Origin: Girardia tigrina
Lineage: Eukaryota
Direction: 5' to 3'
Assembly: GCA_001938485.1 (NCBI GenBank)
Contig: MQRK01192128.1
Coordinates: 1 to 55,195, forward strand
DNA length: 55,195 bases
The position numbers and the translations under genes were made by a program. Below the pieces are notes generated by a model. That model did no database searches, was not told where the DNA came from, and was given only the letters and a program-made list of their open reading frames with translations. This document shows, piece after piece, positions 21,910 to 55,195 of the stretch. Positions within the stretch are counted from its first letter, which is position 1. Each line of letters begins with the position of its first letter.

Positions 21910-23060
21910 TCTCTCAAGTCACGCCTTTAATGGCTTCAATATTTCTCCAAAGTTTGGAGAAAAAATCCTATTGTTATGAAGGAAACATGACTTTATTTTA
22001 CATTAGATATGTTGATGATATTTTCTTGATTTTTGAAAATAAAAACCATATAGATAATTTTTTACAATTTATGAATCAACTTCATTCAAATATAATATTT
22101 ACCAGTGAAATCGAATTAGCGGGCAAAATTTCATTTTTGGATGTATTAATTGAAAGAAAATCGAAGGGCTATGAAACTGAAGTATTTCGAAAGAGTACTG
22201 ACACGGGTTTATACAATAATCCTATGAGTTTCTGTGATCCCAAGTACAATAAAAATATGGTGAATGGATTAATTCACAGAATATGGAATTTATATTCTAC
22301 GTATTGTGGTGTGGATAAGGGTATTGTTGATCTTAAAAGCAGGTTAGAAAATAATGGGTACAATAAAAATTATTTAAATAATTTGATACAAAATACAATT
22401 GACTCAATTCGTGAAAAATCTAATAATAAAAATGAAAACATTATAAATAATGATAGTAGTGATGTAATAAAAACAATAAATTTAAAATTAACATTTTCTG
22501 AAGGCGCGTCTGATTTGAGGAAAGGCCTAAAGAAAAAGGTTCCTTCGGGTTTTAATTTGCGGGCGATATTCATAACTAATAATCTATCGAGATATTTCTC
22601 AAATAAATCAAAAACTCCATCGGGTGTCCAAGCTAATCTAGTATATCAATTTAAATGTCACAATTGTGAATCCTTGTACAATGGAAAAACAAATCGTCAT
22701 TTCCACACTAGAATGGTCGAACACACCAAATTGAGTAGGAATAGCTCAATTCTAGATCACATTAAAAATGCAGAAATAGAGATAAAGTTAACTATGAAAC
22801 TGAATTTACCGTTTTGAAGAAAAATTTTGAAACATATCATTAGAGGATGGTCACTAAGGCATTATTAATAAGGCATTTAAAACCATGCTAAAATGTTCAA
22901 AGTGAATTATCCAATCATATTAAAATCTTTTAATATTAATTAAAAAAAGAGATTAATTGCTTAATAGTCAATGTGCCATATAAATGACTTGTTATTTGAA
23001 ATTTATTTCACAACTGATGATGCCGTAATGGCAAAACATGTTTTGACAAATAAAAAACTT
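21910..23060 (+). mobile_element. 5'-truncated Penelope-like retroelement (RT C-terminus, thumb, GIY-YIG)
   Basis: YIRYVDDIF, ISFLDVLI, VFRKST.TG, NLVYQFKCHNCESLYNGKTNRHFHTRMVEH. Confidence 0.93.
23008..23046 (+). ncRNA. Degenerate hammerhead motif at the Penelope 3' end
   Basis: CTGATGA-T-GCC-GTAAT-GGC-AAAA(for GAAA)-CATG with flanking tcacaa/ttttga stem. Confidence 0.55.
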
Positions 23061-23079
23061 TTAAAATGGAGTTTAAAAA

Positions 23080-25213
23080 AATGTGTTAAAAAACTAAGAA
23101 GTTTCCTTGGACTCACCAATTACTATCGAAGATTTATAAAGGATTATACGAAATATTCGAAAGTTCTAGAATCGTTATGCGGCAGCACACAAAATAAAAT
23201 TTGTTGGACAAACGACTGCGAGGAGGCGTTTCAAAATTTGAAAAAAGAACTTACAAAAGTTCCAGTTTTAGCATTTCCAGATTTTTCAAATGAATTTATC
23301 TTGGATGCTGATGCAAATTTTGACCGAATCGGAGCGGTTTTATCGCAATTGGACGAAAATGGACGAGAAAAGCCAATAGCTTATGGATCACGAGCCATGA
23401 ATAAGCATGAGCTTGGTTATTGCATAACAAGAAAAGAATTATTAGCTATATTTTATTTTACCCAACATTTTAAGCACTATTTGTACGGAAAACGCTTCAA
23501 ACTCCGTACTGATCACTAAGCCATAACGTTTATGTTGAAAACAAAAAAAACCTATAACTCCTCAATTTCAGACATGGATTAATCATTTGAGTAGCTTAGA
23601 TATCCAGATGGAGTATAGAAAAGGGGAAGAACACTCTAATGCCGATGCACTATCAAGAACAGATTGTAAAACTTGCGCTCAATGTCAAACAATACATGAA
23701 GATCACAAAACCGGCAAGTTGAAGTCCAAGATTTTGGCTTTAATGTTAAAAGATAATGGTTCAGAATGTCAGGAAGATTCCAAAGAAATAAACGATATAA
23801 AGAACGAGATTGAAAATAATAAGGAAACAAAGTGGAAAATATTGAATAACATTGTTTATACACAAAAAGATAAAATTTGTATTCCTGAAGACAATACAAG
23901 AAAAATTATAACCCTTATTCACGAGCTGCTATGCCACGCGAGAGTTAAGAAAGTTCACGAATACATATCTCGAAAATTTGATATGACAAATAGAAAAAAA
24001 TTAAAACAATTGTGCAGAGTTGTGAAAATTGCCAGAAGAGAAAAGTGTTGACGACTAAAACGAAAGAAAAAGTAGTTAAAAGTAAACCAACTTTCTTATT
24101 TGAAACGATTCATATTGATTTTTGTGGACCTTTTAATACATCATTTGGAAGACAAAAATATATAATGGCAATCATTGACCAATTCAGTAAATATATAATG
24201 CTGACTGCAGTTCCAGATCAAGGAGAACGCACTGTAGCAAATACTTTGAAAAATAAATGGATTTTTAAGTTTGGCGCTCCAAAAATTATAATGTGTGATT
24301 GCGGTAGATCATTTGAATCAAAACTAGTAAAAGAGTTAGCAGAAAATTGTAAAAGTAAAATATTATTCTCTAGCCCTTATCATCATTCTAGTAATGCGCA
24401 GATTGAAAGACAATTTAGGACAATAAGAGATGTCATCCACATATCATTGAAAGACAAAAAAGGCAGAGATTGGACTGAAATTCTGCCTGAAGTAGAATTC
24501 ATGATCAATGGTACTGTAAAAAGTACAATAAAAATGAGCCCAGTAGAACTCATTTTTGAGAAGAAGATTTCAAGAGAATGGTAGAACGAAACCGACAAAG
24601 AAGATGATGAAATTAAATACGTAAAAATACGACAAGAGAAAATATAAAAATTGTATAAAGCAATCCGAGAAAATAATAATAACGATAATAAAGATGAAAA
24701 ACAACTTATCGAAAGTGAATTTAAAGTAGGTGACTTGGTATTGATCAAAAAACCAAATGTGTCAAAAACCGAAGATAGATATGAAGGACCAGCTAAAATT
24801 GTTGAGAAGAGACATGATAAAAGCTATATTATTAGATTCGATGGGGGGCGTACCATTGTAAGAAACGTTGAATGGATAAGACTTTTTAAACCGAGAGGGA
24901 TGTAAGGAAAATTATAATCAAAACTAATAAATGTATGTTGCGTAATTTATGTATGGAATGTTCTAGGTGTGATCTTTGTATTGTTGTGTAATAGGTCACG
25001 ACAGAAATAGTGTGTATGGTGAAATGAATGAGTGTATGTTTGACCCAGATTGATGACGGCATTAATTAATATATATATACTGATGATATTCCTCATTTTA
25101 TTGTCTTTAAATAAATATTATGACAGTCTCAAAGTCTTCTAACAACGCAGACAGATGATTCAGTGTTCTTGTCTGCAGTATTCTTGTCTTGACAATTGTC
25201 AAGAACATTTACA
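23080..25213 (+). mobile_element. Ty3/Gypsy LTR retrotransposon 3' part (RT end, RNase H, integrase, 3' LTR), inactivated
   Basis: LRSFLGLTNYYRRFI, LDADA..IGAVLSQ, TDH, IHIDFCGP, CDCGRSF, IERQFRTI, RYEGP; order RT-RH-IN. Confidence 0.95.
24901..25213 (+). repeat. Gypsy 3' LTR
   Basis: Purine tract gagaggga immediately before TGTAA...; ends ...TTACA. Confidence 0.75.
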
Positions 25214-28576: not shown

Positions 28577-28764
28577 TTACAGAACATCAACAACAAATGG
28601 ACTTCCAGGGATATTACTATCTCCCCATTTAACCATTAAATAATGACGACCTTTCTCTTGGACTCGATAATTTATTATAAATTGATTGTTTCCCATATGT
28701 TTCACTGACACTTCTTCGCATTGTGATGTTGGACCCGCAATTCCAACAAACAGAATATCGTTTC
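28577..28764 (-). CDS. FLN: Filamin last coding exon (dimerisation repeat)
   Basis: [25 protein letters not shown]...[13 protein letters not shown], stop TAA. Confidence 0.94.
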
Positions 28765-29503
28765 CTATAATAGAAGAAACTAATTTTGAAAGGAGAGACG
28801 AAATACAAAAACATTGACAAATGTTTGAAAAATTATAATAATGCATTCTACAATATCTCTGATCCTATTGAACTTCAATAAGTGCAATATACAATTATTG
28901 TATATATATACAGGGTGGCCCAATGGGTACGCAGCCTCTAATTTTTGCATATTCTAAATCTACTCGTCAAGACGAGTATTTTGATATATAACATGTGAGG
29001 TGTAAAAATTCCAAAACTTGACCTTTATATATCAAAAAGAATATATCAAAAAACTCGTCTTGACGAGTAGATTTAGAATATGCAAAAATTAGAGGCTGCG
29101 TACCCATTGGGCCACCCTGTATATATCGCAAAATAACAAATGATACACATTTTTGATTGTCTCTACGTTCTCAATCAGATTCTATTGGTTTCAGTGTGAA
29201 AACGTAACTGAATTATTTTTCGAAAAATCTGAAAAATTTGATTTTTTCGAGAATTTTTTGGTTTAAATGATTTAATTTTATCACAACTGAATATTTTAAG
29301 GACAAACTGGATTCACAATGATATTTATATAAAAATTCATTGAACACTTATGACAGAAACGTGTTAGGCACAATAGAAAATTCAATAAATCTAAAGGGTT
29401 ATATCACCAAATATTTATTGCATATAAAAAATCGCAGTTTTCTTTTACTTCACGTCTCATAAAATAACAAATGATGCACCGTTTTGATTGTCTCTATGTT
29501 CTC

Positions 29504-29653: not shown

Positions 29654-32600
29654 TGTATGCCATGGAAGTTTGAGTACCCCTAGGATATGTTATATTTATA
29701 TAATCTAGTGAAGTACGTACGTACATATATACAACAACAATCACTATTACAATTATATAAATTAATATTTTTATACCTGATGCTAATCAATATATTTTTC
29801 CATTCTTTTTATTAGCTTACTTTCTATATGTATCCATGGAATTTAGTAACCTATTTTTGAAGACTTTTTACTCAATCCATTTTCTTCAAACTTTGCATAT
29901 TTACTCATTTTCGATGAAAATCAAAAAAATTACTTTTGCATAAAATGTTGAACCTGTTTTACATAGCAATGTTTTGGTTTTTTTCCTTCCATGCTTTATT
30001 ATGTTATTGGTAACTATTTAATTGCAAAATGGAGTTGTAAAATTTTTTTTTGTATAAAATTTTACCTTCTACAAAAGGTTTAACCCTTAAATGCATGATT
30101 TTTTATTTTTTCATGAAATATTTGATGACAGCTAAAGAATTTTGACGTTTATATCAATATTGGTGGGAGTTTTGACATGTTTTGTTATAATCGTCATAGA
30201 CAAAAATGTACAAAGATAATTTATTTACAAAGGACAGCAATTATTTACACAAACTGGATGCATGGCACTTTCAAACGTTTGTTGTATCATTTTTGATACA
30301 AGATGCATTCAAGGGTTAAATAGTTGCTATAACCGTAATTAATTTATTAAAAAATGTAATAGTAATTTTCCCTTCTACAAAAGATAACAAAAAAAATTCT
30401 GTTGGCCAAGTAGAGTTTTCTCCACACAAAGAATGGTTATGTAATTTTTTTTTAGATTTACTAGTTATTCTGTCTATTATTTTTTTAATAATATATGAAT
30501 ACTGATTTGATTTGTTAAGAAGCTGTTTTATTGATATCACTACTTTGCTTTTTTCATTGTTGTTGCATTTTTTAAAGCAACCCTGCTTGGTTGGGAGAAA
30601 CGCGCTTTTGCTACAGGCAGTGTCAAAGATAGACCACACAGTGGGAGTAAGAAAACATCAGAAGAAACCTGTGCGCTATCAATCAATCAATTGAGCAGTC
30701 ACCAATTAAATACATTCAGAAAAGATTTCGGTAAAAAAGCATGTATATAGTGTCCCTAAAGTCTGGAAAAACTTAAAATCTCAATAACTTAATTTTTATC
30801 CCTTGAAGATAAGTTTAAATGAACCATCTTTGTAAATCTCACAGAGTGTTTAAATAAAATCCGCCAATGGAGTTTATGTTTTTGCTGTTCTCTTAGGCTT
30901 ATTTTCATACAAATATTAAGGTAGTCCACGAAAATTTTGTAATTTATGCGTTCACAAAAGTGACAGATTGCCGACTTGTACTCTAGGTAATTTTCCAAGT
31001 AATCTCGGTTTTTTATGACTGAAATTTATCATAACATTAATAGAAATTATTGAAATAGAAAATATTGAGTACCAAATGAATTTAGGTTTTACATACAAGT
31101 AGGTAAATTTTAGGATCCCTACCAAATTAATATTAATGTATCTTTTATTACCGGAATTAAGAAGACCTGTACTAAATTTAAGACACAAGGAAAGAGTGAT
31201 CGAAAATCACAAATTTTATTTGAACCATAACATATTAATCATAATCCTTTAGGTCATACAATTTGACAGACATAACATGATCGTTCAAGCAATTAATTTT
31301 TTTGAAGTTTATATTTTTACATGCATACTGACGGTCCTCTGACAGTTAACGTTGTTCATTTTGGTTGACACATTATATAATGATGTCAATCCAATAATTA
31401 CTGGTTATTTTTCTGAGTTCACATCGTAGAACAGTGTTGCCCACGTCATAAACGATATCCATTGTTCGTTTGGAGACGATACTTTTAATCAATTGAACGT
31501 GCTGAAATTAAAAGAGGATGTTGTTCAGTTTAATGCTAGTCGTTAACGACTCGACATTTGGCAACCAAAGAAAGTATTGATGAGTCTCACGTTACTGTAT
31601 TTAACACACTGAAAGAGCTAGCTTATAAACCTTAAATTACTCGTTTGTTCGATTACCTAAGTGATGATTACCTAAACAGGCGAATGCCGAATTGTGCGAT
31701 CATTGACGAAATGTTCAGAACAGATCCTAAAAGAATCAGACTAAGATTATCATTTACATTTGAATAATCGTAATTGCGTTTACTGGAACGCTACCAACTT
31801 GCATCACGTGATCCAAAAAGAAGTAAATTTGACAGGAGTAACTGTTTGGTTCGGTATTTCCTCAGTGAGAATGAGGCCCCTCAGTGGTGTATTGAAAGAT
31901 GAAGTGTACTCCCGCAAACCTATGTCACTTCATCAAATGAGGTTCGAGATTTTTGTACAGATAAACACAAAAAATGTGCAGATCGAGACAGAATAGCGAT
32001 CTACATTCAAAACGATGGCGGATGCTTTGAAAAAGTTTCTCGATCCTTTTCTTTGTATTCCACTTACTTATTTAGTTGAAGAGTAAATAAACTTTAGAGC
32101 AGGGCTGCGGAGTCGGAGTCGTGAAACTCGAGTCCGAACAAAATAATAGCAAATATCATATTGGGTTGGCCAAAAAGTCATTGCGTTTTTTACTAAAATA
32201 TTTATTATCAAAAAATGACATGGATGCACAAATATTTTTACACGATATACTGTCCATTATTTTCAATCACTTTCTTTCACCTTTCCGGTAGCTTCATTAT
32301 TCCTGATTCATAAAAACCTTTGCCTTTGTCAGCAAAAAAGCCGCCTAGGAAAAATTTGATGTCATCATTGGCGAATGTTTTTCTGTTTAAGTAATTCTGC
32401 AGTGATCTAAATAAGTGAAAATTCGATGGGGCCAAGTCTGGAGAATACGGTGGGTGCGGCAAAACCTCCAAACCCAGTGATAAGAGTTTCTGGCGAGTGG
32501 TCAAACTTGTANNNNNNNNNNNNNNNNNNNNNNNNNNNNNNNNNNNNNNNNNNNNNNNNNNNNNNNNNNNNNNNNNNNNNNNNNNNNNNNNNNNNNNNNN

Positions 32601-35600
32601 NNNNNNNNNNNNNNNNNNNNNNNNNNNNNNNNNNNNNNNNNNNNNNNNNNNNNNNNNNNNNNNNNNNNNNNNNNNNNNNNAAGCATAACCTTCTTTTGGT
32701 GAATTTCTGCTTTTGGGATCGTTTTGGCAGGCTCACCACGTTTTGTCCATGATCGTCGGCGTTCCACATTGTTGTAAACAATCCATTTTTCGTCACCCGC
32801 AATCAAGCGCTTCAAAAATGGATCACTTCAATGGATCTCGCTTCGAAAGGGAATCGCAATTGTTTCACCACGTTTCACCAAATGAATTTCTTTCAGTTCA
32901 TGTGGTAACCACATATCGAGTTAACTGACGAATCCAAGTTTCTTTAAATGACTTCCAACACTTGATTTTGATATTTCTAGAGTTTCTGCAACTTCTCTTG
33001 TTGTCATATGTGGATTAGATTTGATCAGTGCTGTTATTTTGTCGCCATCAACTTCAACTGGTCGACCGGAGCGTGGTGCATCTTTCATGTGAAATTTTTC
33101 AGAACGAAATTTAGAAAACCAGTATTGACACTGTCGAAGTTTTAAGGAGTCACTACCATATACAAAACATATCTTCTTATGAGCTTGCACAGCGGTTTCC
33201 CCTTTTCGAAAATAATGCAACAAAACATGACGAATATGTTCATTTTGATTTTCCATTTCGAATTGACGGTAAAGTAATAAATTACAACAAAATCAATTAA
33301 TATTTTGTATAAACATGGTCTGAAAATTAAGGTTTCAGAATATATAATTGAATTTAAATTTTATCACATCGTTTTATATTTTCAAGATTTTCATTAGGAT
33401 GTACTCAAATACGCAATGACTTTTTGGCCAAACCAATAAATCGACCTAAAAAGGAGTCGGGGTAAGGCAATTTTAGTCCAATTCCGCAGGCCTGCTTTAG
33501 AGCAATACAATTTCGCATTACTTTTTTCAACATCCTATATACGAATAATACAAAATAATTATTATAAAATGAAAGATTGATGCGATAGATGTTGTTTAAC
33601 ATGATTTTCTCTCACGATTAAGTTCTGATAAAGATTCAGACTTTACATTAACTAGTCGAACCGATAAACAGTCCAAATAAATACCGACATTTTATCATGA
33701 AAAAAACAAAACCAAGTTTAATATCGAGGAATAACAAATATGTGAAATCATACCAGCTTGAGACGCGTCAACATTAAATGTATTGACTTGGTTAAGACTG
33801 GCCTTTTTAACGCCCATTCCATTACATTGGACTTTATGAGAGAATGATGTCTTTTGTAAAGACTTAGCACTGACAAAAGATTTTCCAACCGTTTCGACCT
33901 TCAAATTTGATTGCTGGTGAACTGGAATTTCGGAACCATTGTTTACGGATCCAGTTATATTAGCCTTAATTCAATCATTAATAACGCTATGATATTTTAT
34001 CACAAATTTACAGTGAACGGAGATCCGGTAATATGATAATTACCCCCATATTTGACTGTTATTTGATATTCTCCTGACACTGAGGGTACATAGATAAATT
34101 CATAGCCCTCTTCATGTTCTTGAGAATAAAGTTGGACTTTACTTGGACCATCAATTGTAACATTAAGGGGTCCAGTTCCAGAGTTTACAGTATTAACAAT
34201 AAAACTATTCTTTTTACCTGATTTAAAAAGAAAACATTAAAATAAAATCTTTAAAATTTTTTCATAATTTAATCAGATTTTATTTAGTTGGTTCGAGTTA
34301 GCAAAGACAAGAACAAACTACAATCATAATGATCATTCTAAAAAATATATCCATGAAGACGCAAAACGAAAAGACAAAGTCCATCGGACAAAGAATCTTT
34401 AACAACCATGTGACAATACGAAGATATTTGATGAGATGATTAAAGTGAAATTTGATATTATTAATGATGAAATAAGAATTCGAAAAGGGTTTATGAAGTG
34501 ACAGAGAGAGAAAGACTTGATGAGTTGTAGATTCTCAACAGGCTCATATTTCTATACTCTCTAAATTATCAATTCCATATTTTTATTACCACAAATTAAG
34601 TTAAGTATTGCTTTTTAAAGACAAATTCGAATAATGTATACATTCATTTTTATTGCTTTAAAAAAAGAAGAAATGATAATCAAGAACCAAAGGAAAACTA
34701 AAATTTTAGTCCGATAGATTTTTGAAATAACCACTTAATTTATATAATTATTAATAATTATTTTTTTCTTTATTTTCTCTTAGCTCCTTTGTGATTTCAA
34801 TCTGAGTTTATTTCTCTTTATATTAGGTTGGGGAAAAAGTAATCCATTATTTTAATCCATTATTTATCGATCAACAATTTCAAATTTATGCTCTTTGTCA
34901 AGGTAACATTTCACAGTAATTTCACAAAAATTTTTTTGCTTTTTTATTCAGTTCTGAGTTACAGGGTGTTAAAAATGGAAGTCAACAAAGAAAAAATTCG
35001 GTATATTTTACAGTTTTTATTCGATAAAGGCGAAAATGCAAGCCAGGTGGATGTTATAGTGAATGGTGTTTATGGTGCCAATATTGTAACAGCTAATTAC
35101 ACGCAATTTTGGTTTCGTCGATTCCGTTGAGGCATTTTTGATGTTAAAGATGCACCTCGCACAGACAGGCCTATCGTTGAAAATGTCGATAAAATCTAGG
35201 CAATGATCGAAGTTGATCGGCATGTTAATAGTCGTAGCATCGCACAGGAGCTGAAGATCGACCACACAACGGTTTTAAACCATTTAGGCAAAGCAGGATT
35301 CAAAAAGAAACTTGATGTTTGGGCTCCACACCAATTAACACCAAAAAACATGATGGATCGAATTTCCATCTGCGAAGCCTTGGCCAAACGAAATGAAATC
35401 GACTCATTTCTTAAACGGATGGTTACTGGGGATGAGAAATGGGTCCAATACGACAATATTATACGAAAACGATCGTGGTCAAAGCACGGTGAAGCACCTC
35501 AAACGGTCGCCAAACCAGGACTAACAGCCAGGAAGGTTCTACTGTGTATTTGGTGGGACTTGAAAGGAATCATTTATTATGAGTTGCTTCCGTATGGCCA

Positions 35601-38600
35601 AACACTAAATTCAGATCTGTACTGTCAACAACTGGACCGTTGAAGATGGCAATTGATGAGAAACGACCAGAATTGGCCGACAGAAGAGGTGTTGTGTTCC
35701 ATCACGACAACGACAGACCACATATGTCTGTAGTGACTCGCCAGAAACACAGGAGCTTGGTTGGGAAGTTTTAATGCATCCACCATATAGTGCGGACCCG
35801 GCACCAAGCGATTACCACCTTTTTCTAACATTGCAAAATTTCCTGAGTGATAAGAAATTGGGATCAATAGAAGATTGTGAAAATCGATTACTACAGTTTT
35901 TCGTGAATAAGGACCAAGACTTCTACGAGAGAGGCATTATGAAGCTACCTTCAAATGGCAACTAATTATACAACAAAACGGTGCATATTTTACTCCAAGA
36001 GGACAATCCGAAACATGTTAAATAAAGTTTTGAATTTCACGGCAAAATAATGGATTTCTTTTTCCCCAACCTAATTTATCCAATGAATTTTTGTTTTATG
36101 TCATAATTATAAGGATATTCGTATTTTTCAACTGGAATATACAAAATATAATCAGTAAAATAAATAAGTACAGTTGAAATGCAAATTAAAATTTCTAAAC
36201 TAATCAAAGTTTTAAAAGAATGATTCTTGAAACTTACCAACATAACCACTAACAAGACCTTCTCCTCTAGCGATAACCATTGCTGGATCGGCATGTTGTT
36301 GACTGATTACCACTCTAAACGGACTGCCGGGAATATGTTTATTTGTAGCTTCATCTGTAATATTAATTAAATGTTCTCCACTTTCTTTTGGAATAAATCT
36401 TATAGCATATTGATTTTTATCAATATTTTGTATTACAGCCGGTTCTTCAATCTTAGAGGGACCTAAAATTGTGGCTTTTAATTTACCGTCCCACCGACCG
36501 GTGCTTGATTGTGGATAGTTAACAGTAAAAGCAGCAGGTTTTCCGATCTAAATATTTATATTAAATGTTTTTAAATTTTTAAGTATGACTTTATATATTA
36601 CATTATTATTGTTATTATTACAGTGTTTTAGAAATCTATAAATTGTATTCTTAAAACATATTTTTGAAAGATGTTTTTGGTGCAATTGTTACCGTATATA
36701 AATCAAATGAACAAATTATTTGTTAATTATACAAAGTGAGATATTTGATCGGAATATAGAGAGATAAGTGATTAAAAACTACGAATCAGAAATACAATTT
36801 AAATCTACAAACAAAAAGTGAAAAGAAAGTTTTGTTAAGAGGAACAACAACCATGAAATCCTTCATGGAATTGGAAAGAAGTTGCATATAAGTTCTACAA
36901 ACCCTCAAGAACAATACCAGTTTCAAATGCTTTGAGAAAATTTTAAAAAAAGTGACTGTAACTCGAAAACGTCTTTTGCTGATTTTCACAAGATCATATT
37001 GATGCAAGGAGAGTACGCGTTCCAGAAATTGGAATGTCAAGAACTTAGGTTTTCTAACGGAGATAGGATAGGATATCTTTATTTATTAGAAAATAAAATA
37101 CTTATTTTACCAATGTTTTTTAAGGTTTCCAGCTGGGTGTAACCTAAGAAAATGTGGGTATACAGTATAACATTTATTTTTACTCAAAAATTGTTACATC
37201 ACACATGCACACTGAATTTAAATGTTTAAGAACAAAAGCGTGTATGTGCGAGGAGAGAGAGCGGGTGGAATAACAGTGCGGTCATTTTTTATTGAACCCA
37301 TGCTTTACCTATAAATAGCCAAATTTTGGGTGTACATCTACAAAAGTTGGGTGTACATTATTGACACAAAATGGCCTTTAAAAACCCTGTATTTGAGTAT
37401 TCCAGAGGGTCGTAGCATAAATAGGAGTTCATTTCTCTAGATAACAGTTAGCAGCGTATTTGCATTGAAAATTACAAATAGTGATTTTAATTCTGATATC
37501 TTTACACAATTTTTCCAGGAATCTCCAAAATGTTTTAATTATGGACAACGTTAGGTTTCACAAAACAAATACTGTGATCAATTTAATTTAAGAAAATAAA
37601 TTATTGAAGCAATTTAATCCAATTGACATCCTTATTTTATGATTAAATCTAGGCTTCGCACTAATAGAACCGCACTAAGTGAAATTTTAGTAAAGGAAAC
37701 TAATAATTATGGGTAAAAAAACTCAGCAGAAAACAGCCAACTTTTCTCAATGTACCGGTTTCTATCGCTACTTTGCAAGATAACAGAGACATATAATAAA
37801 AATAACAATTGACAGCAAAGCAAAATCTAATGTTTGAGATGAAAATTCTCACACTCAATGTAATCCACTCAATTTTAGCTTTCACATCAAACCCAAAACA
37901 ATCTGAAATCTTATCCATGTAATTTAACTAAAATGTCTGACCAAATGACAATCTTAGAGAACAGTATATTCTATCAACTGTACCAGGTTTGAGACTAGTA
38001 ACACTCAGTATAATAGCACATTCGGTCAGTGCAAGACAATCACACCGAAAAAATACATTTTGCTTTGAATTTCTTCGTTCTTTCCAAATAATTCATAAAT
38101 TATTGATTTTATCATCAAGATATAAACACTGAAAAGTAAAATCTATATACAAGGGATAAAAAGAAGAAGACTAGCTTTTGGCTTGCTTTCAATTGTCATC
38201 TTTATCATATGTCTCCATTACCTTCGTAAAGTACGGAACAAAAAAGTAAACATATCGTTTTCTCAAATGGAAATTGATAGCTACCAATAGTTGGTTTGTG
38301 AGAATGGAATTGATCACTTTATAAGAAAAAGAAATAAATTCATTTTAAATCGAATGATTTATTGGTAAAATGTTTTTTTTAACTATTGTATAGTCCCGTT
38401 TAAAGCGTTACTTTAATACATGGCGTGGATTGATCTAATGATTTGATTATATTCTCGAAACGCGTCGTCTTCTTATCCATTGTACATAAATATACATAGA
38501 TATTTGTATTTATTTGTAAAAAATATTTTTGTTTTGTTCATTATTATTCGTTTAAGTGACCTTATAGATCACAATAATTCGGTCAATCTGTCAGCTCCCT

Positions 38601-47500: not shown

Positions 47501-49795
47501 TACTTGCAATATCGACTAAATTTTAATAAAGTTGTTTTTTCAGAAAAAAATCATTTAGGTGATTCTGTTTGTTGGTGATTCTATTCAAGAAAGGAGGTCA
47601 AAATACATAGACAGGAAAGTCAAGATTTAAGGTATGGTGTTTCCTTCCGTTGAATGTTTGATTCAAAAAATGGACAACAAACAACAAAATAAATATATAG
47701 AGTGATCCTACTTTGCTATTCCTCTTATAAAATCAAAGCTTTGGGACAATTTTATATTCCACCAGGACAATCACCAGATTCATGTTTCTTATTTGATGAT
47801 GAACTTTTCCAAAAAAATAATATTTGATTATTAACCGATTGCAGTCGTAAATTGTTTCATTACTCGCTACCACAGGTCGATTTTTTTAAATACATAAATA
47901 CACACTTACATAATTGTTACAAAATTTAAATACTAAAAAAAACTATTTCACGTTGTTTTTTTTATTTTTCTTTATTAATAAGGTCTTAAATCAATTTAAT
48001 AATCAAAAGAAAATGTGTTCTTTTTGTAAGAAGTTTGAAGGAACCCATGTAAGTCTTTCTGCTCAGTATACATTTATTACAAAGAAATGTTACAAACTGT
48101 ACACCTTCTCAAAAATACTGTAGAATAATGTACTTTGGAATCTGAAAAATGTATATGTACATTGTAATGCTAGTAAGTTTTCTAAATTTTCAATGTATGG
48201 TGTCTCTCAAAACAGTCATCAGGATGCAATCCTGGATTCTGCGGACAAGTTTTACAATAATAAACAGTCTCTCGGCTCCCTCCTTTCACTTTTATATTAC
48301 TGCACGCTATCAGCTATATATCTTTTATCACAGGGAGAGTCTAACTCGACATTACCAGTGAATATGACTGCTGTAAACATCATGTCGAGCTATACTATAC
48401 GTACGACCGCAACTGGTAGTGTGAGGAATATTTGAATGTTTGATGTTTTGTGTTTGAATGTGTATATTGATTTGGAAATGTGTCTCTCCTACCCAGATGG
48501 ATGATTAATATTTTAATTCTTATTATCTAAAATATGTAATGTTTAAATTTATTTTTAATTTCATATAATTTTAAAATTTTAAATAAGTTAATTAATTTTT
48601 ATAATATTTAATAAATAAATCAAATTAATATTTTTTAAATAATTAATTATCATTTTAATTATTATCCAATAAGTTTTGAGTGAATATTTTATTTAAATAT
48701 TTATTTCTCCATTTTCTAAAAAAAGTAATGCGAATTAAACCATTAATCAATTTCGCTTTGAATGCAAATGTACGAAATTGTTGTTTAAATAAAAATATAA
48801 AAAATCAAATTGGTGTTTTTAATAGGTAGATTAAAATGGTCTGCTCAAAGTCCAGATTTGAATATTACGGGAAAGTTTTGGAAAACGATTACACAAAATT
48901 CATTCATGATTTATTTGTTTAACAGTTTTGGGAAATCGACAATTTATTTGAATTAATAAATAATATTCCAACAGTTAATTAAAGAAAATTAATCTACCTT
49001 CAATGAAGCATTTACTGGCATCTCCAATAGGAGCAACATTGACCACAAACGGACTGTTATTTACCGGTACATCGTCGAAGGAAACTGTAATACAATGTTT
49101 ACCAGCATCAATGGGAGTATATTGACAGCAAAATATTCCATTGCCTTCGTCAATAATTTCGAATGGTAAAAGTAAATCATCCGGATTCTAAGATCATTAA
49201 AATAACTCTATCATTTTCAACATTGTTAAGGAGTGGAAATACCGATAGTGACAACTGAATATCACCATGACCAGCTTCAGACACGTCAATGTGAAATTGG
49301 ACTGGTACCGACGGAGTCAAGAATCCACCGGTGGGTAACACTCCTTCTCCGATAACTTTAACTTTGTTTGGTTCGGATTTCGGTAGGATGTTCATGTGAA
49401 AAGGTGCATCTGGTATAAGTGTGTCGGCATGTTTGATTTCCATAGTGTGAGGTCCAAGCATAGTTGGAGTGAAAACAATATCATAAATTCCCGGAACAGC
49501 ATTTTCTCTCGGTTTTACTTCACATGGAAATTCTAGTCCTTCTTCATTCTTGCAAGACACCTTAAGTTTTATAAGTTTTATTTGTTTTCCAATAAAGTTT
49601 ATGCTTTAAAAATTCATAAAAATTTCAAGAAAAAATCCCACACCTTAAGTGGAGCTTCTCCAGCTCTTGAGGCATCAATGGTGAACTTTACAGGGTCACC
49701 CAGTCGATTAACAGTGCTTGGTTTCAGGCACTCTCCGTAACATTTCACTTTAGATGTGTTTATAGGATCGCGAATTGGCAGTTTAAAAGGACTAT
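28577..49795 (-). CDS. FLN: Filamin (cheerio/FLNA-like), 3' portion, 18 exons; 5' part lies beyond the window end
   Basis: Repeated filamin Ig motifs ([27 protein letters not shown]...G.Y.I.IKF...HIPGSPF). GT-AG exons total 3,629 nt and stay in frame to the TAA at 28577 (C-terminus ...[17 protein letters not shown]). Confidence 0.95.
28911..29119. mobile_element. Tc1/mariner-type MITE in the last filamin intron
   Basis: Perfect ~66-bp TIRs beginning CAGGGTGGCCC, TA flanks. Confidence 0.93.
29506..29652. repeat. (TA)n microsatellite with gap; others at 1-42, ~44495-44517 and ~54830-54861
   Basis: Direct reading. Confidence 0.95.
30084..30315. mobile_element. piggyBac-type MITE (232 bp)
   Basis: TTAA-CCCTTAAATGCAT...ATGCATTCAAGGG-TTAA. 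Confidence 0.85.
30560..32040 (+). mobile_element. Highly degenerate rosa/DD41D-like Tc1-mariner remnants
   Basis: [13 protein letters not shown] at ~30610 and [14 protein letters not shown]...GVTVWFGIS...[10 protein letters not shown] at 31760-31920. Confidence 0.55.
32100..33494. mobile_element. hAT-type MITE interrupted by a mariner
   Basis: Ends CAGGGCTGCGGA / TCCGCAGGCCTG with a perfect 8-bp target-site duplication ctttagag (32092-32099, 33495-33502). Confidence 0.88.
32161..33436 (-). mobile_element. Mariner (mellifera-like), full length, pseudogenised
   Basis: TIRs ttgg(g/t)ttggccaaaaagtcattgcgt, TA flanks; [13 protein letters not shown]..., [16 protein letters not shown]. Confidence 0.95.
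33754..33964 (-). CDS. FLN: Filamin exon Q (hinge 2 and start of last repeat)
   Basis: ANITG...[10 protein letters not shown]...[14 protein letters not shown]...FNVDASQA. Confidence 0.9.
34012..34217 (-). CDS. FLN: Filamin exon P
   Basis: [23 protein letters not shown]...[14 protein letters not shown]. Confidence 0.93.
34823..36074 (+). mobile_element. Mariner (mellifera-like, [12 protein letters not shown] type), full length, pseudogenised
   Basis: TIRs ttaggttggggaaaaag; [27 protein letters not shown]. Confidence 0.95.
36238..36547 (-). CDS. FLN: Filamin exon O
   Basis: IGKPAAFTV...[13 protein letters not shown]...HIPGSPFRV...[13 protein letters not shown]; gtaagt donor. Confidence 0.92.
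37111..37389. mobile_element. Non-autonomous element (hAT-like CAG/CTG ends), copy 1
   Basis: Inverted near-copy at 54877-55183; short TIRs. Confidence 0.7.
38880..39345 (-). repeat. Unclassified dispersed repeat; other copies at ~4140-4430, ~26080-26385 and ~48421-48530
   Basis: 38880-39095 and 39270-39345 match the reverse complement of 4140-4430. Confidence 0.8.
39813..39998 (-). CDS. FLN: Filamin exon N
   Basis: [35 protein letters not shown]. Confidence 0.93.
40051..40241 (-). CDS. FLN: Filamin exon M
   Basis: [19 protein letters not shown]...[24 protein letters not shown] (repeat-21-like). Confidence 0.95.
40295..40459 (-). CDS. FLN: Filamin exon L
   Basis: [12 protein letters not shown]...[15 protein letters not shown]...HIP. 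Confidence 0.92.
40508..40789 (-). CDS. FLN: Filamin exon K
   Basis: [19 protein letters not shown]...HVLGSPF...[12 protein letters not shown]. Confidence 0.93.
40956..41159 (-). CDS. FLN: Filamin exon J
   Basis: [13 protein letters not shown]...GSPFKI...[12 protein letters not shown]...DTREAG. Confidence 0.93.
41219..41377 (-). CDS. FLN: Filamin exon I
   Basis: [19 protein letters not shown]...[13 protein letters not shown]; AG/GT boundaries. Confidence 0.9.
42149..42176 (-). CDS. Candidate internal first coding exon (MFSKKGNKS) or 12-nt microexon of filamin
   Basis: ATG TTT TCT AAA AAA GGG AAT AAA TCA G followed by a consensus GTAAGT donor; phase 1 fits exon I. Confidence 0.45.
42375..42548 (-). 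CDS. FLN: Filamin exon H
   Basis: [31 protein letters not shown]...IPGSPF. Confidence 0.93.
42600..42869 (-). CDS. FLN: Filamin exon G
   Basis: IVTTPSG...[13 protein letters not shown]...AYGPGLSHG...[10 protein letters not shown]; AG/GT boundaries. Confidence 0.92.
44752..44875 (-). CDS. FLN: Filamin exon F (hinge 1 / start of next repeat)
   Basis: [10 protein letters not shown]...[17 protein letters not shown]; phases link exon E to exon G. Confidence 0.78.
44928..44960 (-). CDS. FLN: Filamin exon E, 33-nt hinge-1 microexon ([11 protein letters not shown])
   Basis: tttatag acceptor, gtgagt donor, phase 0-0. Confidence 0.75.
45785..46800. mobile_element. Degenerate pogo/Tigger-like element; another pogo-like end at ~45480-45507
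   Basis: TA-CCGTATTTATCGGACTATAAGTCGCAC terminus with repeated tataagtcgcac subterminal motifs; right boundary uncertain. Confidence 0.5.
46992..47257 (-). CDS. FLN: Filamin exon D
   Basis: ORF 46968..47237 ([11 protein letters not shown]...[15 protein letters not shown]); ttcag/gtaatg boundaries. Confidence 0.9.
48998..49187 (-). CDS. FLN: Filamin exon C ([31 protein letters not shown]...NNSPF)
   Basis: Manual translation; AG/GT boundaries in phase. Confidence 0.88.
49243..49560 (-). CDS. FLN: Filamin exon B
   Basis: ORF 49177..49560 with [29 protein letters not shown]; AG/GT boundaries, 318 nt. Confidence 0.9.
49644..49795 (-). CDS. FLN: Filamin exon A ([24 protein letters not shown]...AGEAPLK)
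   Basis: taacag acceptor (phase 1), gtgtgg donor (phase 0), filamin repeat motif. Confidence 0.88.
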
Positions 49796-50199
49796 CTGTT
49801 AAAATAAAATTTAATTACATTATGACTTTTTGTCCTATATTTAAACAATATAAAATAAACATAAAACAACAATAAACATCAACAGTTTTACAACTCAGTA
49901 GGAGGTTAATGTAGGATATTTTTGATAAAAATGCAAAAAATAATTAGAATTATAAGAAGAAATTAAGGAACGACTACAAAATTTGTTTCATAAAAAATAA
50001 AGTGTCCAAAATGATTTTATTTATTAATAATCATCATCAAACGGGAAATATTTATTTTTTTATAATATCTTACTTTAAAGCAACAAATTATATTAATTAG
50101 TTTTTGTAATCGCTCATTAATTTCTTGATAATTCTTTTTTTATAAGATTTTTCTTATATTTCTTATATTAACCTCTTTCCGAAAAATCATTTTAACTAC

Positions 50200-53100
50200 C
50201 GGTTTTTATCTGTGATAAGCTTTGACATCCCATACATAGACCAAGGATTCGTGACTCGGACAAATTACTTCTTTCAGGACTAATAAAAAGATTCTCAAAC
50301 ATGTTAGAACTTGGTGGGTCATATCTTGAAATTTTATTTAAATCACACAAAGATTGAGTATTTGCTTTTGTGGAAATTTCATCGGATGTGGGTAAAAAAA
50401 TATTACTATCTGCGAATTGGTTACGAGTTGCCGTTATTGCAGAATAGCCACGGAAATGCTTTATTTTGTTACATAGCTGTTTATCAGTATTGCTCAAGCA
50501 TCTGCTGTTTCTTGAGATGTAGTCGCAATTTGTAACATTCGCCAACAATGAAAGTGAATCGTTTAAATTGGATTTTAATGCATTTATTTCACTATTACTA
50601 CCAGAATGATAAGTAATAAGTTTCCTTTGACTGGAAGACTTGTTATTATCAAAAACATTAACATCCAACTGCCGTAAAGAATAAGTATGGTTATCTCCGG
50701 CAATGGAAGAAACATCTGTAATGGATAACTTCCCCGATTTGGATGTTAAATCTACTTCATTGACATTTTTCATATTCCTTTGAGAACTGTTAGATCTTTT
50801 CGAACATTTGTTAAATAAAGTGATTATCGGTTTTTTTGTAAAGTTATTTGTAACGGCCGTGTCGTTTGACAAAGTAAACGATGTGATATTGGATGTTAGA
50901 GTGTCTTCACAAACCGAGGACGCTTTAACTGAAATACATTTCTTTGGTTTACTTTTGGTATAGGTCTGTATAGGACCAAAATGATTAGCACCGGACTGTA
51001 CAGATTTAATTTGATTCCACGTTTTTATTTTAGGAGGATTACGAAATTCATTAGCAAAGGATCCTGATTCATAGCTGAGTTCTTGTCGCAATGATTCTGA
51101 ATTTCTATTTATTAACTCCTCAACAAACAAAGTTTGATTAAGCAGTTCTTGAGGTGATATCTTATTCAGATCTTCAGAGAAGTTCTCATGGAAATTCAAT
51201 GCACCAAAAGAATGCTTTGCATTATTTTGAGTGAAAATATTTTTTACATTCCGATTTGTATTGGTTTTGTTTTCTTCTGAACTATTTGTTAATTGTTGCT
51301 TCAGAAAACCTAATGGTGGTGGCAAAGGCGGCGGAGGAGGAATTGGAAATTCATCTGTTATGTCTTGGATACAGTTCAAGGAATCTGCTTTCGACCAAGA
51401 AAAACGTACATCTTCTGGTGTTTGGTAGTCGATATTTTCATCATTATTTAGTGCTTTATTAATTTGTGAAAGTCTTACAAGAGAATTAGATTTAATGAAA
51501 TTCTTAATTAGTTTTGAAGAATCATTGGGAGAAAAATTCTTTCCATATATCCGATCTTGATTCAGAAGAGATGAACATGAAGCTTCTAATTGAATCCGTT
51601 TAGGATAAGTGTCAGACAATTGAGTGAAACTTACATAAAAAGGCAGTTTATTTTGAATAAAAATTGAATTTCCATAATTACAAGACCTAAAAATCTGAGG
51701 AGATATCTCACTATAAGACTGACTTATGTCTGGTAACGTTTCAAGGTGTTCAATACTCAAAATCTTATTAGAATTTGATGTACTTCTATTACTTTTATTA
51801 TTTACATTATTCGAAAAATTATTTTGATCAGTTATATTTTCACAATCGACAAATTTTTGACTAATTAAAACATTGCAATTATTAAGAAATTTACATAGAA
51901 AACTTTCATCTACTTTTAATTGTGTATTCGAACAGGCAACATAATTAAAATTTGGAAAATTGTTATCACTAAAACTTTTTATACCAAGAATGTCTGAATG
52001 TTTTGTATAATTATGATTGTCCATATCCTCGACGTCTGCGTATTCTTCATTAATCTTATGTTTGTAATCATCAATATGTGGTTCTTGTTCATTGAAGCCA
52101 TGATAAAAATATGATTCCAATACTTCATTACTTAACATTTCAATTCGTGGGGAAATCACACAGTTTATCCCATTAAATATAATATTGTCACTACATTTAC
52201 TTCGTTTTATAAAATAATATTGTATTTCGTCTAATTCTAAAATAGTTGAATTTTCAATTTTGCTCAGTGGTTTTGGTTCGACATATTTCAACGAATCTTT
52301 AGCAGATAAAGTGAAATGTGTACGTTCATCTTCAGGGTTATCTTTCTTACAAAAGGTCTTTCTCTGTGAAGAAAGTAGAACATCTTGTGTTTGATGTCCG
52401 ACCATTAATTCATTACCAGAACAGTAAGAGTCTTGAAACTCAATATTTTCATCAGAAGGAAAACTTGGTAACTTAAAAGACTCATCAGATAAAAGATTAG
52501 TCATAGAACAATCATAAGAAAATTCACACACAGCCAAAGAAATATCAGATGGTGGTTCTGGTAATATATTTTCCTTATTAATAGTGGCTTTATTTGTTTT
52601 TGTTACTGAATGTTTCGGACCATGACGAGCTATGATTGGTAAAGGTGGTTTACTAGAATCCACTTTTTCAGGACTAATATTTGTTAATTTCGGATGCATT
52701 GGTATTGAAAAAGTTATAACATCTGAATGTATTTGAACCGGTCTTAAATTATCTGATGATAAAGATCTGCGACAAGGAACATATTTTAAACGAGAATCAC
52801 CATTCGGAGTATTAGGGGCACTATGTCTTACTGCAATATTTGGTGACCTGGAATTTCTTCTTACAGGAATATCATTATCTTCATCACCACTTGCGATTTT
52901 AATTAAATCCTCTCTCAGGGATGACTGACTGGTAGCTTGGGATGTAAAATAACTATTTATCAAAGTATTTTCTGAATATCCATCTTCACTGCTATCCTCA
53001 AATAATGGTGGCAATCTTGGACAACCAGTTAAATCTGAACATGGTTTCAACAAAAACCTTTGCCCCATATTATCGATATCCATATCATTAGAAAAAAAAT

Positions 53101-53847
53101 CCATATTTTCTTTAAACGATACATCATTATAATGTGGTTTACCTGGCAAGGAATTTATCGAATCTTTGTTTTGGTTAGTCATAATTGTGTACTTACGATG
53201 TAAATATTCCTCTGCATCTAACAAACTACCAGCGGTTGCGTCAAGAAACAAATCGGAAAAATCCGAAGGAATAGATAAACTATCATTTATATCTTCAAAT
53301 CTTCCCTCATCATCTGAATTATTTTGTTGATTATAAGTACCCTTATCAGTGAGATTAGTTAAATTGGTTTTCGTTGTTAAAGTTTTGATTGTCCCAAGAT
53401 CAAGATTAGCGGAAGAAGATGAACATTTATTACCTGGTCCTCGATAGTTATTGATAGCTTTTATTATATTTTGTCGGTTAGTCTTCGAACTGAATTTTGA
53501 TTTACTACTTTTATTTTGACTCAGACTATTATTTGCAGTATTTGATACTGAATGTTGTTCAGAAACTGTTGATACTAAACTTAAATTGTCATTTAAGGAT
53601 TTAGATTTCCTATCATTGGACAAGTCCTCACTATTAATCGGTGGCTTCGGTGGAATACTATTAGATAAGTCAAAATATGAATCGAAATCAGGAGCTTCAG
53701 GGAGGACAAGGTTTTCATCATATCCAGAACTATTATTAAATGATTGAAGAATACTATCGGCATCTGTACGCTCATCATCCATAACTGCATTTATTGATAA
53801 CAGTTCTTCATAAGTAGATTCTTGGTGAAAGACGTGTTTCGGAAAGC
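50200..53847 (-). CDS. Giant (3,648 nt, 1,216 codons) Ser/Asn-rich low-complexity exon candidate inside a filamin intron; cassette or alternative terminal exon, or else a nested gene (ORF 50192..53782)
   Basis: Stop-free 3.6 kb in ~70% AT DNA. Phase-1 acceptor (attattag at 53848) sits 65 nt upstream of the first ATG with the frame open. A possible phase-1 GT donor at 50199 precedes the TAA. Confidence 0.75.
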
Positions 53848-54307
53848 CTAATAATTCAATTTTTGTTAATTATAGAGTATTTAAATAAACGATTTTAACA
53901 AGTGTCATTTTTTGTCATTAACTAACATAAATTATATCTACTTATAGTATGGAGTAGCATTTGAATAATACATTTTTTTATTTTTAAGACTATAATTTAT
54001 AATTTCAATTGAACAATAAGATTTTTTGAAACTTTTTTGATCGAATTATGAATTTTCAAGAGGAAAAATGGAATGCTCGATTACGCAGGGCACCCAAAAA
54101 ATGTTTCATTTCATTTTTTAGTGTTTCTTATACAATTTCGGCGTGTTGATTCTAGTGGTAACAATTATTTTTATGTGGCTACAGCGGTTTGGATGAAAAA
54201 GCCATTTTTCTAAAAATTCATTTTTATAACTCCGCTAACCATTATTTTGTTATATTTTTAACGATTTTAATATTAATATTGATTTTGTTATTTGTTTATA
54301 GATAAAA

Positions 54308-54547
54308 ATGTTATCTAGACAATGTAAATTATCATCTGACTGTTTTTGCTACGTTTGTGGATATTATTTTGGTCCCTCTCAAATCAAATATAATATATCT
54401 AGGGGCACGAAGTACTGCGAAGCATATGAGAAATATTTTGGAATACACATAGGAGATCAAGATAAATCCTGGGCTCCTCATGTTATATGTGGATGCTGTA
54501 AACCAACATTGGAAGGGTGGCTAGGAGGTAGCAGGAAACGAATGTAA
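54308..54547 (+). mobile_element. Chapaev3-like (CMC) transposase N-terminal fragment
   Basis: C...DCFCYVCG...YEKYFG..IGDQDKSWAPHVICGCC...L.GWL.G motif; truncated where the transposase normally continues. Confidence 0.7.
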
Positions 54548-54828
54548 AAAATCAAATTTATTCGCAAGAGTTGCATTGTAAAAATCGTCCCTTTCTATAA
54601 TAATATAATCCAAGTGGTCATATCTAAAATTACAATGTTAATATAATATGTTTATCTTCCTAGATTTTTGAGGTCCAACAAATATTTATGGACTGACTAT
54701 TTAATAAATGAACCTTTCTTTTTGTTAACTAATTCCATTATTAACATTACAACACCCAGATAACATCGTTCTTTGATAAAAATTATTTTCGTCCTATTCT
54801 ATAACTTTTTTTTAAATACTCTTAAAAC

Positions 54829-54865
<37 letters not shown>

Positions 54866-54876
54866 CAATGCTTCAC

Positions 54877-55183
54877 ACAGGATTTTTAAAATCCATTTTG
54901 GGTGTACAATGTACACCAAAAAATTTAGCTATCTATAAGTAAAGCATGGGTTCATTAAAAAATACACACACTGCTATTCCACCCACTCTTTCTCCCTCTC
55001 GTACATACACAAGGTTATTTATAATTGTATACTTATTTAATAAGTATAAGACATTCTTTTGTTCTTAAACCTTTAAATTCAGTGTGCATGTGAGATGCAA
55101 CAATTTTTGAGTAAAAATAAATGTTATACTGTACACCCACATTTTCTTAGGTTACACCAAGCTGGAAACCTTAACAAACACTG
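54877..55183. mobile_element. Non-autonomous element (hAT-like ends), copy 2
   Basis: Reverse-complement match to 37111-37389. Confidence 0.7.
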
Positions 55184-55195
55184 TATATATATATA

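Follow-up and report, generated by a model that had tools for sequence, protein, structure and literature searches.

Filamin is the textbook actin cross-linker and mechanosensor, and the known differences among its isoforms are small (hinge 1, segments of 41 and 82 residues) or arise from alternative starts. Here we analyse a stretch of 55,195 nt from Girardia tigrina (the window), which forms the first part of the 79,225-nt contig MQRK01192128.1 in an assembly of 1.43 Gb and 255,254 contigs (GCA_001938485.1), and which carries, on its minus strand, part of a filamin gene with an open exon of 3,648 nt. Our best explanation, to which we give a probability of roughly 80%, is that a classical filamin gene, apparently that of a freshwater planarian, contains a cassette exon that is subject to alternative splicing and restricted to its lineage.

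The closest described insert belongs to human filamin C, in which immunoglobulin (Ig) repeat 20 contains an unstructured 82-residue insertion responsible for isoform-specific myotilin binding and localisation (PMC7216277). Like that insertion, the planarian exon would place an unstructured segment inside a filamin Ig repeat. However, the insertion of FLNC, a constitutive part of that protein in rod 2, is 15 times shorter and has no sequence similarity to the planarian exon, which is a single skippable exon apparently located in rod 1. Hinge 1 of filamins B and C is alternatively spliced in a regulated manner (PMC7216277) and is likewise an optional, flexible, non-Ig segment of the rod, but it comprises ~30 residues between repeats 15 and 16, whereas the giant exon would add 1,216 residues within a repeat, before its last strand. 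In Drosophila, one filamin gene, cheerio, yields products of very different size, the isoform classes CherA-D, mainly through internal starts and with differing numbers of Ig repeats, and no giant disordered cassette is described among them (PMC5521747). Among the insect filamins that we retrieved, there was no relative of the giant exon.

Outside filamin, optional long disordered regions occur in other structural proteins associated with actin, such as the alternatively spliced PEVK-type segments of titin. An intrinsically disordered region (IDR) that is long and present in only some isoforms is also described for Zasp52, a Z-disc scaffold (PMC13521563). These are other, non-homologous genes, and their disordered regions lie between domains, whereas the giant exon lies inside one. 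Neither literature searches on filamin isoforms, filamin insertions and planarian filamin nor our protein searches yielded an optional disordered exon of such size within a filamin repeat. A preliminary description of this DNA had stated that no insert of this size was known from vertebrate filamins, and we found none in any named filamin.

An open giant exon joined to and skipped in filamin RNA

The filamin Ig-repeat exons run along the minus strand from ~49800 down to 28577, with matches to PF00630. Immediately upstream of them on the same strand lies the stop-free 3.6-kb frame that the preliminary description had pointed out, with the following elements (a slash marks an exon border).

53847..50200, minus strand: giant exon, putative filamin cassette exon; 1,216 codons (3,648 nt), both ends in phase 1
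53849-53848, minus strand: AG acceptor of the giant exon, ..attattAG/GC, read in the sequence
53782..53780, minus strand: in-frame ATG at exon codon 23, unchanged in the three species compared
50199-50198, minus strand: GT donor of the giant exon, ACCG/GTAGTT, read in the sequence and in an RNA joint
50199..49796, minus strand: 404-nt intron separating the giant exon from the filamin exon at 49795, as read from the RNA joint

The open frame begins at 53869, after an in-frame TAA at 53872-53870, and contains an open reading frame (ORF) of 1,196 amino acids (aa) from the ATG at 53782 to a TAA at 50192. No stop occurs in the coding frame of the exon; the remaining two minus-strand frames hold 75 and 190 stops, and the frames of the opposite strand 52-90. 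With the base composition of the exon or of the introns, 1,216 codons would stay open by chance with a probability of ~1e-42 to 1e-50. Direct reading also bore out the borders that had been claimed: an acceptor of phase 1 whose AG occupies 53849-53848, so that the exon begins at 53847; a GT at 50199 giving a length divisible by 3; an unspliced frame that, past this donor, encodes only Gly-Ser-stop; and a phase-1 filamin exon at 49795, which begins ..aacAG/ATAGTCC and whose frame uses the carried-over G.

The RNA data consisted of assembled contigs, not reads, from four runs (X1-X4) of one sample. These runs contain 83-90% of the words of the giant exon, and their contig sets amount to 32-37 Mb, compared with the 1.43-Gb genome. 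On 49300-55195 the contigs behave as RNA, and they leave both flanking introns (49891-50087 and 53831-54815) at zero depth. Their tiling of the giant exon extends from 50200 to 53824/53830, and in each of the four runs a 511-nt contig connects 50200 with 49795 across a gap of 404 nt, whose borders on the gene strand are GT..AG (CT..AC on the plus strand). The depth in the bin 50088-50284 derives solely from this spliced contig, which starts at 50200, and no contig of the four runs reads through the donor into the empty interval 49891-50087.

The main filamin contig, with a depth of 180-243, has a loose end at 49797 that bears 30 letters translating to ..YIKFNDVDVK. The sequence ..IKFNDVDVK is the end of the repeat that precedes the giant exon in an orthologue, P0001, described below. 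Since the loose end before 49795 encodes the end of the upstream repeat, the main filamin contig is the exon-skipped form, and this is the major form. The giant-exon contigs reach a depth of ~4-12 outside a repeated segment, against 180-243 for the constitutive filamin contig, so that inclusion amounts to roughly a few percent in this single sample, a rough figure only, as contig depth is a poor measure of abundance. The 30 loose-end letters have no match in the contig of the gene itself. Directly after the window follows a run of N at 55196-59185 (3,990 nt), and the exon encoding ..IKFNDVDVK most probably lies there. The exon at 59475-59753 was considered as the upstream partner and ruled out, as it ends a different repeat (..DSPFMANILP SADKTDVSKV).

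The exon thus combines AG..GT borders and symmetric phase with RNA evidence of both downstream joining and skipping, properties expected of a cassette exon. The inclusion and skipping that the preliminary description had proposed are visible in the joint from 50200 to 49795 and in ..IKFNDVDVK before 49795, respectively. The junctions 50200 to 49795 and upstream exon to 49795 were accordingly seen, while in this species no contig showed the junction from the upstream exon to 53847. For the third arm of the proposed switch, a truncated filamin, we found no support: no read-through contig was found in the four runs, and the stop after the donor is not conserved, the frame of the orthologous contig L010 running 55 codons further.

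Separately, in the upstream intron at 54816-55195, next to a (TA)n tract, RNA contigs with a depth of 10-33 and loose ends on both sides were observed, which probably stem from transcription of a repeat family, not of filamin.

Orthologues, selection and the upstream junction

A word-indexed protein search returned two proteins that cover the whole ORF. The first, P0001 (1,568 aa, PF00630), contains a filamin repeat ending in ..GTYDIYIKFNDVDVN, then the homologue of the giant exon from GFPKHVFHRESTYEELLS.. to ..FKY (48% identity, full coverage), and then two and a half further filamin repeats. Both of its joins coincide exactly with the splice sites predicted in the window, with ..KFNDVDVN joined to GFPKHVFH at the acceptor. 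The second, P0002 (1,247 aa), is encoded on L010, a genomic Logan contig of 4,494 nt. There the exon measures 3,636 nt, is open and of phase 1 at both ends, and is bordered by the acceptor ..ttatcAG/GCTTCCC and the donor ATTG/GTAACT; an intron of ~130 nt follows, and then (D)SPYKLAIRDPINT.

The orthologues are collinear with the giant exon over its full length, and the three sequences (window, P0001 and L010/P0002) are about equidistant, at 44-48% identity. Between the window exon and L010, 46% of the residues are identical and the introns are unalignable. The synonymous proportion of differences (pS) is 0.78, which is saturated, and the nonsynonymous proportion (pN) is 0.34; the two values are given instead of a dN/dS ratio, which saturation makes incomputable. 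Because the frame, the phases and a length divisible by 3 are kept while synonymous sites are saturated and introns unalignable, the comparison argues that the giant exon is conserved and under selection, as the preliminary description had suspected, with conservation seen in both L010 and P0001.

In a full HMMER scan, P0002 and an 86-aa fragment, P0003, were the only matches among 1.84 billion representatives; therefore, the exon appears to be lineage-restricted, confined to a narrow and poorly sampled clade. The source of the fragment, a 744-nt contig from an ENA metagenome (L015), is a relative of exon residues ~194-466 with in-frame stops and frame changes, so we left it out of the comparison as a decayed or low-quality copy. 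It indicates that this environmental sample contains a pseudo-copy of the exon or another related animal. A word search with the first 300 exon residues gave no junction-spanning fragments of 165-525 aa.

These orthologues bear most directly on the upstream junction. In this species no RNA contig was seen across the acceptor at 53847, all contigs ending at 53824-53830, and this gap is compatible with a transcript start of the exon's own or with trans-splicing at the AG at 53848. The giant exon might then be an alternative first coding exon, reached from an internal promoter or by spliced-leader trans-splicing at that AG and translated from the ATG at 53782, from which a product lacking the actin-binding domain may be made. 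Such a product, comparable to the short Cheerio isoforms of Drosophila, would consist of a disordered head followed by the last dozen Ig repeats, and it could be made alongside the cassette form. Besides the contig ends 17-23 nt before the acceptor, the invariance of this Met in three species speaks for it. Planarians are also known to trans-splice some of their mRNAs. In addition, short isoforms of Drosophila cher use internal starts (PMC5521747). However, P0001 has the upstream filamin repeat fused in frame exactly at the acceptor, the 21 codons preceding the ATG, FPKHVFHQESTYEELLSINAV, are conserved as protein in P0001 and L010 as far as the AG and not beyond, and the low depth (~5) by itself accounts for contig breaks near the exon end. 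On balance we regard an alternative first exon as unlikely. The cassette reading thus takes its upstream junction in this species from P0001 and from the coding conservation of these 21 codons, which together suggest that the exon is spliced to the preceding filamin repeat.

The same sequences speak to whether the frame could be an independent gene nested in a filamin intron, extending from the ATG at 53782 to the TAA at 50192. It does form a complete ATG-to-stop ORF of 1,196 aa, and the genomic contig L010 yielded P0002 as an ORF by itself. Yet RNA is spliced at the donor that lies two codons ahead of the stop, and the contigs cover neither this stop nor the intron that follows. Moreover, the L010 frame lacks the stop, both phases and the divisibility by 3 are conserved, and P0001 has filamin fused to either side. 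A nested gene is, in our view, very improbable.

Several points weigh against the cassette exon. The RNA evidence comes from contigs of a single sample, and the acceptor-crossing contig is missing from it. P0001, the one sequence with both junctions in one frame, runs at its ends into non-filamin residues (an apparent intron) at the window's exon borders, so that it would be an ORF from a partly spliced transcript contig. Further, the disorder prediction was built on a shallow alignment of three sequences, by which disorder is supported but not conclusively, and the motif matches described below are regular expressions alone, from which partner binding is predicted only. To these are added the limits on the inclusion figure given above and on the repeat number given below.

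Copies of the exon and mobile elements around it

Part of the giant exon recurs in the genome, in the following interval.

51072..50583, minus strand: exon segment within a dispersed repeat, with at least 14 scattered decayed copies at 90-96% nucleotide identity

This recurrence, together with surrounding introns full of mariner and long terminal repeat (LTR)-element remnants, would be expected of a transposon- or virus-derived ORF, or of an exonised repeat, caught in an intron. The segment (490 nt) belongs to a dispersed unit of ~666 nt (copies, for example, at L013:1501-1986 and L014:287-774). It is nevertheless collinear with the orthologues (IKSVQS, CISV.ASSVCED), and because the copied stretches are collinear with the orthologues, the exon copy is the ancestral one, the source of the repeats and not an exonised repeat. 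A partial copy of ~1.5 kb from the 5' end of the exon, at 94% nucleotide identity, was also found (C212589:24840-25839, C213889:4160-6967). Besides 30 nt of upstream-intron sequence, it contains frameshifts and, at the equivalent of window position 52872, an insertion of ~1.5 kb; its flanks show no similarity to the filamin locus.

Only the filamin-resident copy of the exon is intact in this genome, all the scattered copies having stops or frameshifts, and their decay serves as an internal control for the selection on the exon. No family exceeded the Pfam cut-off over the whole frame, and homology to transposase, reverse transcriptase, integrase, capsid or viral proteins was absent both in Pfam and in the HMMER scan, which yielded only the orthologue and one fragment. 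With the scattered pieces being partial, decayed and collinear with the orthologues, they read as copies and not as the source, and a mobile-element or viral origin of the frame is hardly credible; homology of that kind had been named in the preliminary description as a sign against the exon. The ~666-nt unit itself looks like a gene fragment captured and amplified by some mobile element. At least one of its copies is transcribed more strongly than the giant exon, and one transcribed copy explains a mismatched 239-nt contig and the RNA loose end at 50583.

Broken mariner-type transposase genes (PF01359, Mos1 helix-turn-helix) lie in and beside the filamin gene at 7890-10314, 32277-33256 and 35203-35643, in agreement with the decayed transposons that had been reported from its other introns, and downstream of the gene, at 21930-24905, there are RNase H and integrase remnants of an LTR element. 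At 54080-54545 there is also a ~465-bp repeat with at least 40 genome copies at ~90% identity; it contains a Cys-rich ORF of 79 aa on the plus strand (54308-54547) without a Pfam match.

The split repeat and the predicted product

The host gene was identified as filamin from tandem PF00630 repeats with ..SPF.. last strands, both in the window exons and in P0001. Its exons around and beyond the giant exon are as follows.

63010-63545, 59858-60205 and 59475-59753, minus-strand gene: further upstream filamin exons on the same contig; filamin exons were traced as far as 63545, with the 5' part of the gene extending past the readable contig
49795..49644, minus strand: next filamin exon, start ..aacAG/ATAGTCC; last strand (D)SPFKLPIRD of the split repeat and start of the following repeat
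49643..49561, minus strand: 83-nt intron between these two filamin exons, spliced out in RNA (joint 49556/49640, cut +4, canonical GT..AG)
49560..49243, minus strand: following filamin exon, PF00630 Filamin, E 1.5e-11
28846..28577, minus strand: last filamin repeat exon, with the stop codon at its end; encodes the C-terminal repeat, PF00630, E 4.3e-10

The exon at 49644..49795 is 71% identical to P0001 residues 1331-1381 and lies on the spliced RNA contig with a depth of 180-243. As it begins with (D)SPFKLPIRD, the sequence confirms that the giant exon interrupts an Ig repeat directly ahead of the SPF strand, as had been claimed. The best named relatives of the flanking repeats are filamin-A, filamin-C and cher, at 27-38% identity (fish, insect, crustacean and mollusc; insect ~27-35%). 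At these distances the host is neither a vertebrate nor an insect, although AT-richness and mariner remnants had brought an insect origin into consideration; the data are consistent with a planarian. On the minus strand we counted 13 strand-G motifs, 12 of them downstream of the split repeat within the window, and the regular and irregular pattern of these 12 downstream repeats matches repeats 13-24 of the vertebrate layout. In P0001, the repeats flanking the insert align collinearly with adjacent stretches of named filamins, such as residues 1240-1341 and 1349 onwards of an eel filamin-A-like protein. Because 12 strand-G motifs follow it and the P0001 flanks match adjacent named-filamin stretches, the split repeat would be about number 12 (range 11-13) and lie in rod 1, a numbering that is counted from the C-terminus and presumes a 24-repeat layout. 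In human filamin A, Ig9-15 form a second F-actin-binding segment of high avidity (PMC2099194).

The exon product is rich in Ser, Asn and Asp (S 14.0%, N 11.1%, D 6.9%), and the Pro and basic motifs quoted from it in the preliminary description were all located, including PPKPP and RRNSRSP. AlphaFold2 modelling of the 1,196-residue ORF gave a mean predicted local distance difference test score (pLDDT) of 26, with every residue below 50 and only five short helices, among them ORF residues 189-196, 798-809 and 877-900. A search of the ESM Atlas reached 0.83 at best, with disordered look-alikes (exophilin-5, APC), and gave no lead. A Pfam match to E2F_CC-MB scored 17 bits against a cut-off of 33.9 and was read as chance. 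With disorder predicted at every residue and no Pfam family, the modelling supports a prediction of the product as a disordered scaffold with short linear motifs.

Conservation along the exon comes in islands, with window identity ranging from 0.17 to 0.82, and the most distinct of these islands are listed here in coding order.

53263..53201, minus strand: acidic-hydrophobic block DFSDLFLDA..GSLLDAEEYL, the sole predicted helix of the N-terminal third, also matching P0003/L015
53017..52961, minus strand: longest invariant block in the alignment, RLPPLFEDSSEDGYSENTL, acidic, with CK2-like sites
52828..52754, minus strand: conserved basic Ser/Thr sites R[HR]SAP.TPNGD and RRS[LF]SS, in invariant columns
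52564..52547, minus strand: LPEPPS, second conserved motif of [FYWL]P.PP type (LP[ED]PPS, ORF residue 407), from the alignment
51349..51314, minus strand: FPIPPPPPLPPP, EVH1 class-I type [FYWL]P.PP with polyproline and PPLP, in the same alignment columns in three sequences

The proline-rich core at 51349..51314 (DE-FPIPPPPP, ORF residue 812) is preceded by the predicted low-confidence helix 798-809 and an acidic DITDE. Altogether, two [FYWL]P.PP motifs, two PPLP motifs and one run of at least five prolines occupy the same columns in the three sequences. In the window, RRSLSS lies at 52754-52771 and RHSAPNTP at 52805-52828. Further conserved islands are NKLPFYV.FT, PEDV.FSWSK.DSLN.IQDI.D-FPIPPPPPLP, QELL.QT.F..L.NRNS.S.RQEL and CISV.ASSVCED. 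As a candidate substitute for the displaced last strand, GFPKHVFH fits SPF.V.V at the Pro and one hydrophobic position only.

Most transcripts in the sample skip the giant exon and encode ordinary filamin, and a minor form includes it. In the mechanism that we propose, inclusion would separate a mid-rod Ig repeat from its own last SPF strand by 1,216 residues, so that the F-G hairpin of the split repeat would become a flexible loop of that length without a fold of its own, bearing the EVH1-type motifs together with basic and proline-directed Ser/Thr sites. This loop may dock EVH1, profilin or WW/SH3-type partners as well as kinases, by which rod 1 would become a docking platform for actin regulators. 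The insert may also loosen or lengthen rod 1 and thereby change its stiffness, length or actin avidity, in what corresponds to the high-avidity F-actin-binding segment of human filamin A. More speculatively, the split repeat with its strand tethered by a motif-bearing loop might act in one cell type as a force-sensitive switch, in which strand G leaves and returns, and at the same time recruit Ena/VASP and profilin at cross-links; we consider this a long shot. Such a coupling of cross-linking to filament growth is not known from any filamin.

For the annotation of the family, the exon corrects gene models, as protein searches gave only the three relatives P0001-P0003. In planarians, exon-specific RNA interference and in situ hybridisation make the cell type that includes the exon (muscle, neoblast progeny or epidermis) and the partners it recruits testable. 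Taken together, an included giant exon would show that an Ig repeat of the filamin rod can accommodate an insert exceeding one third of the protein in size, and that such an insert is kept by selection.

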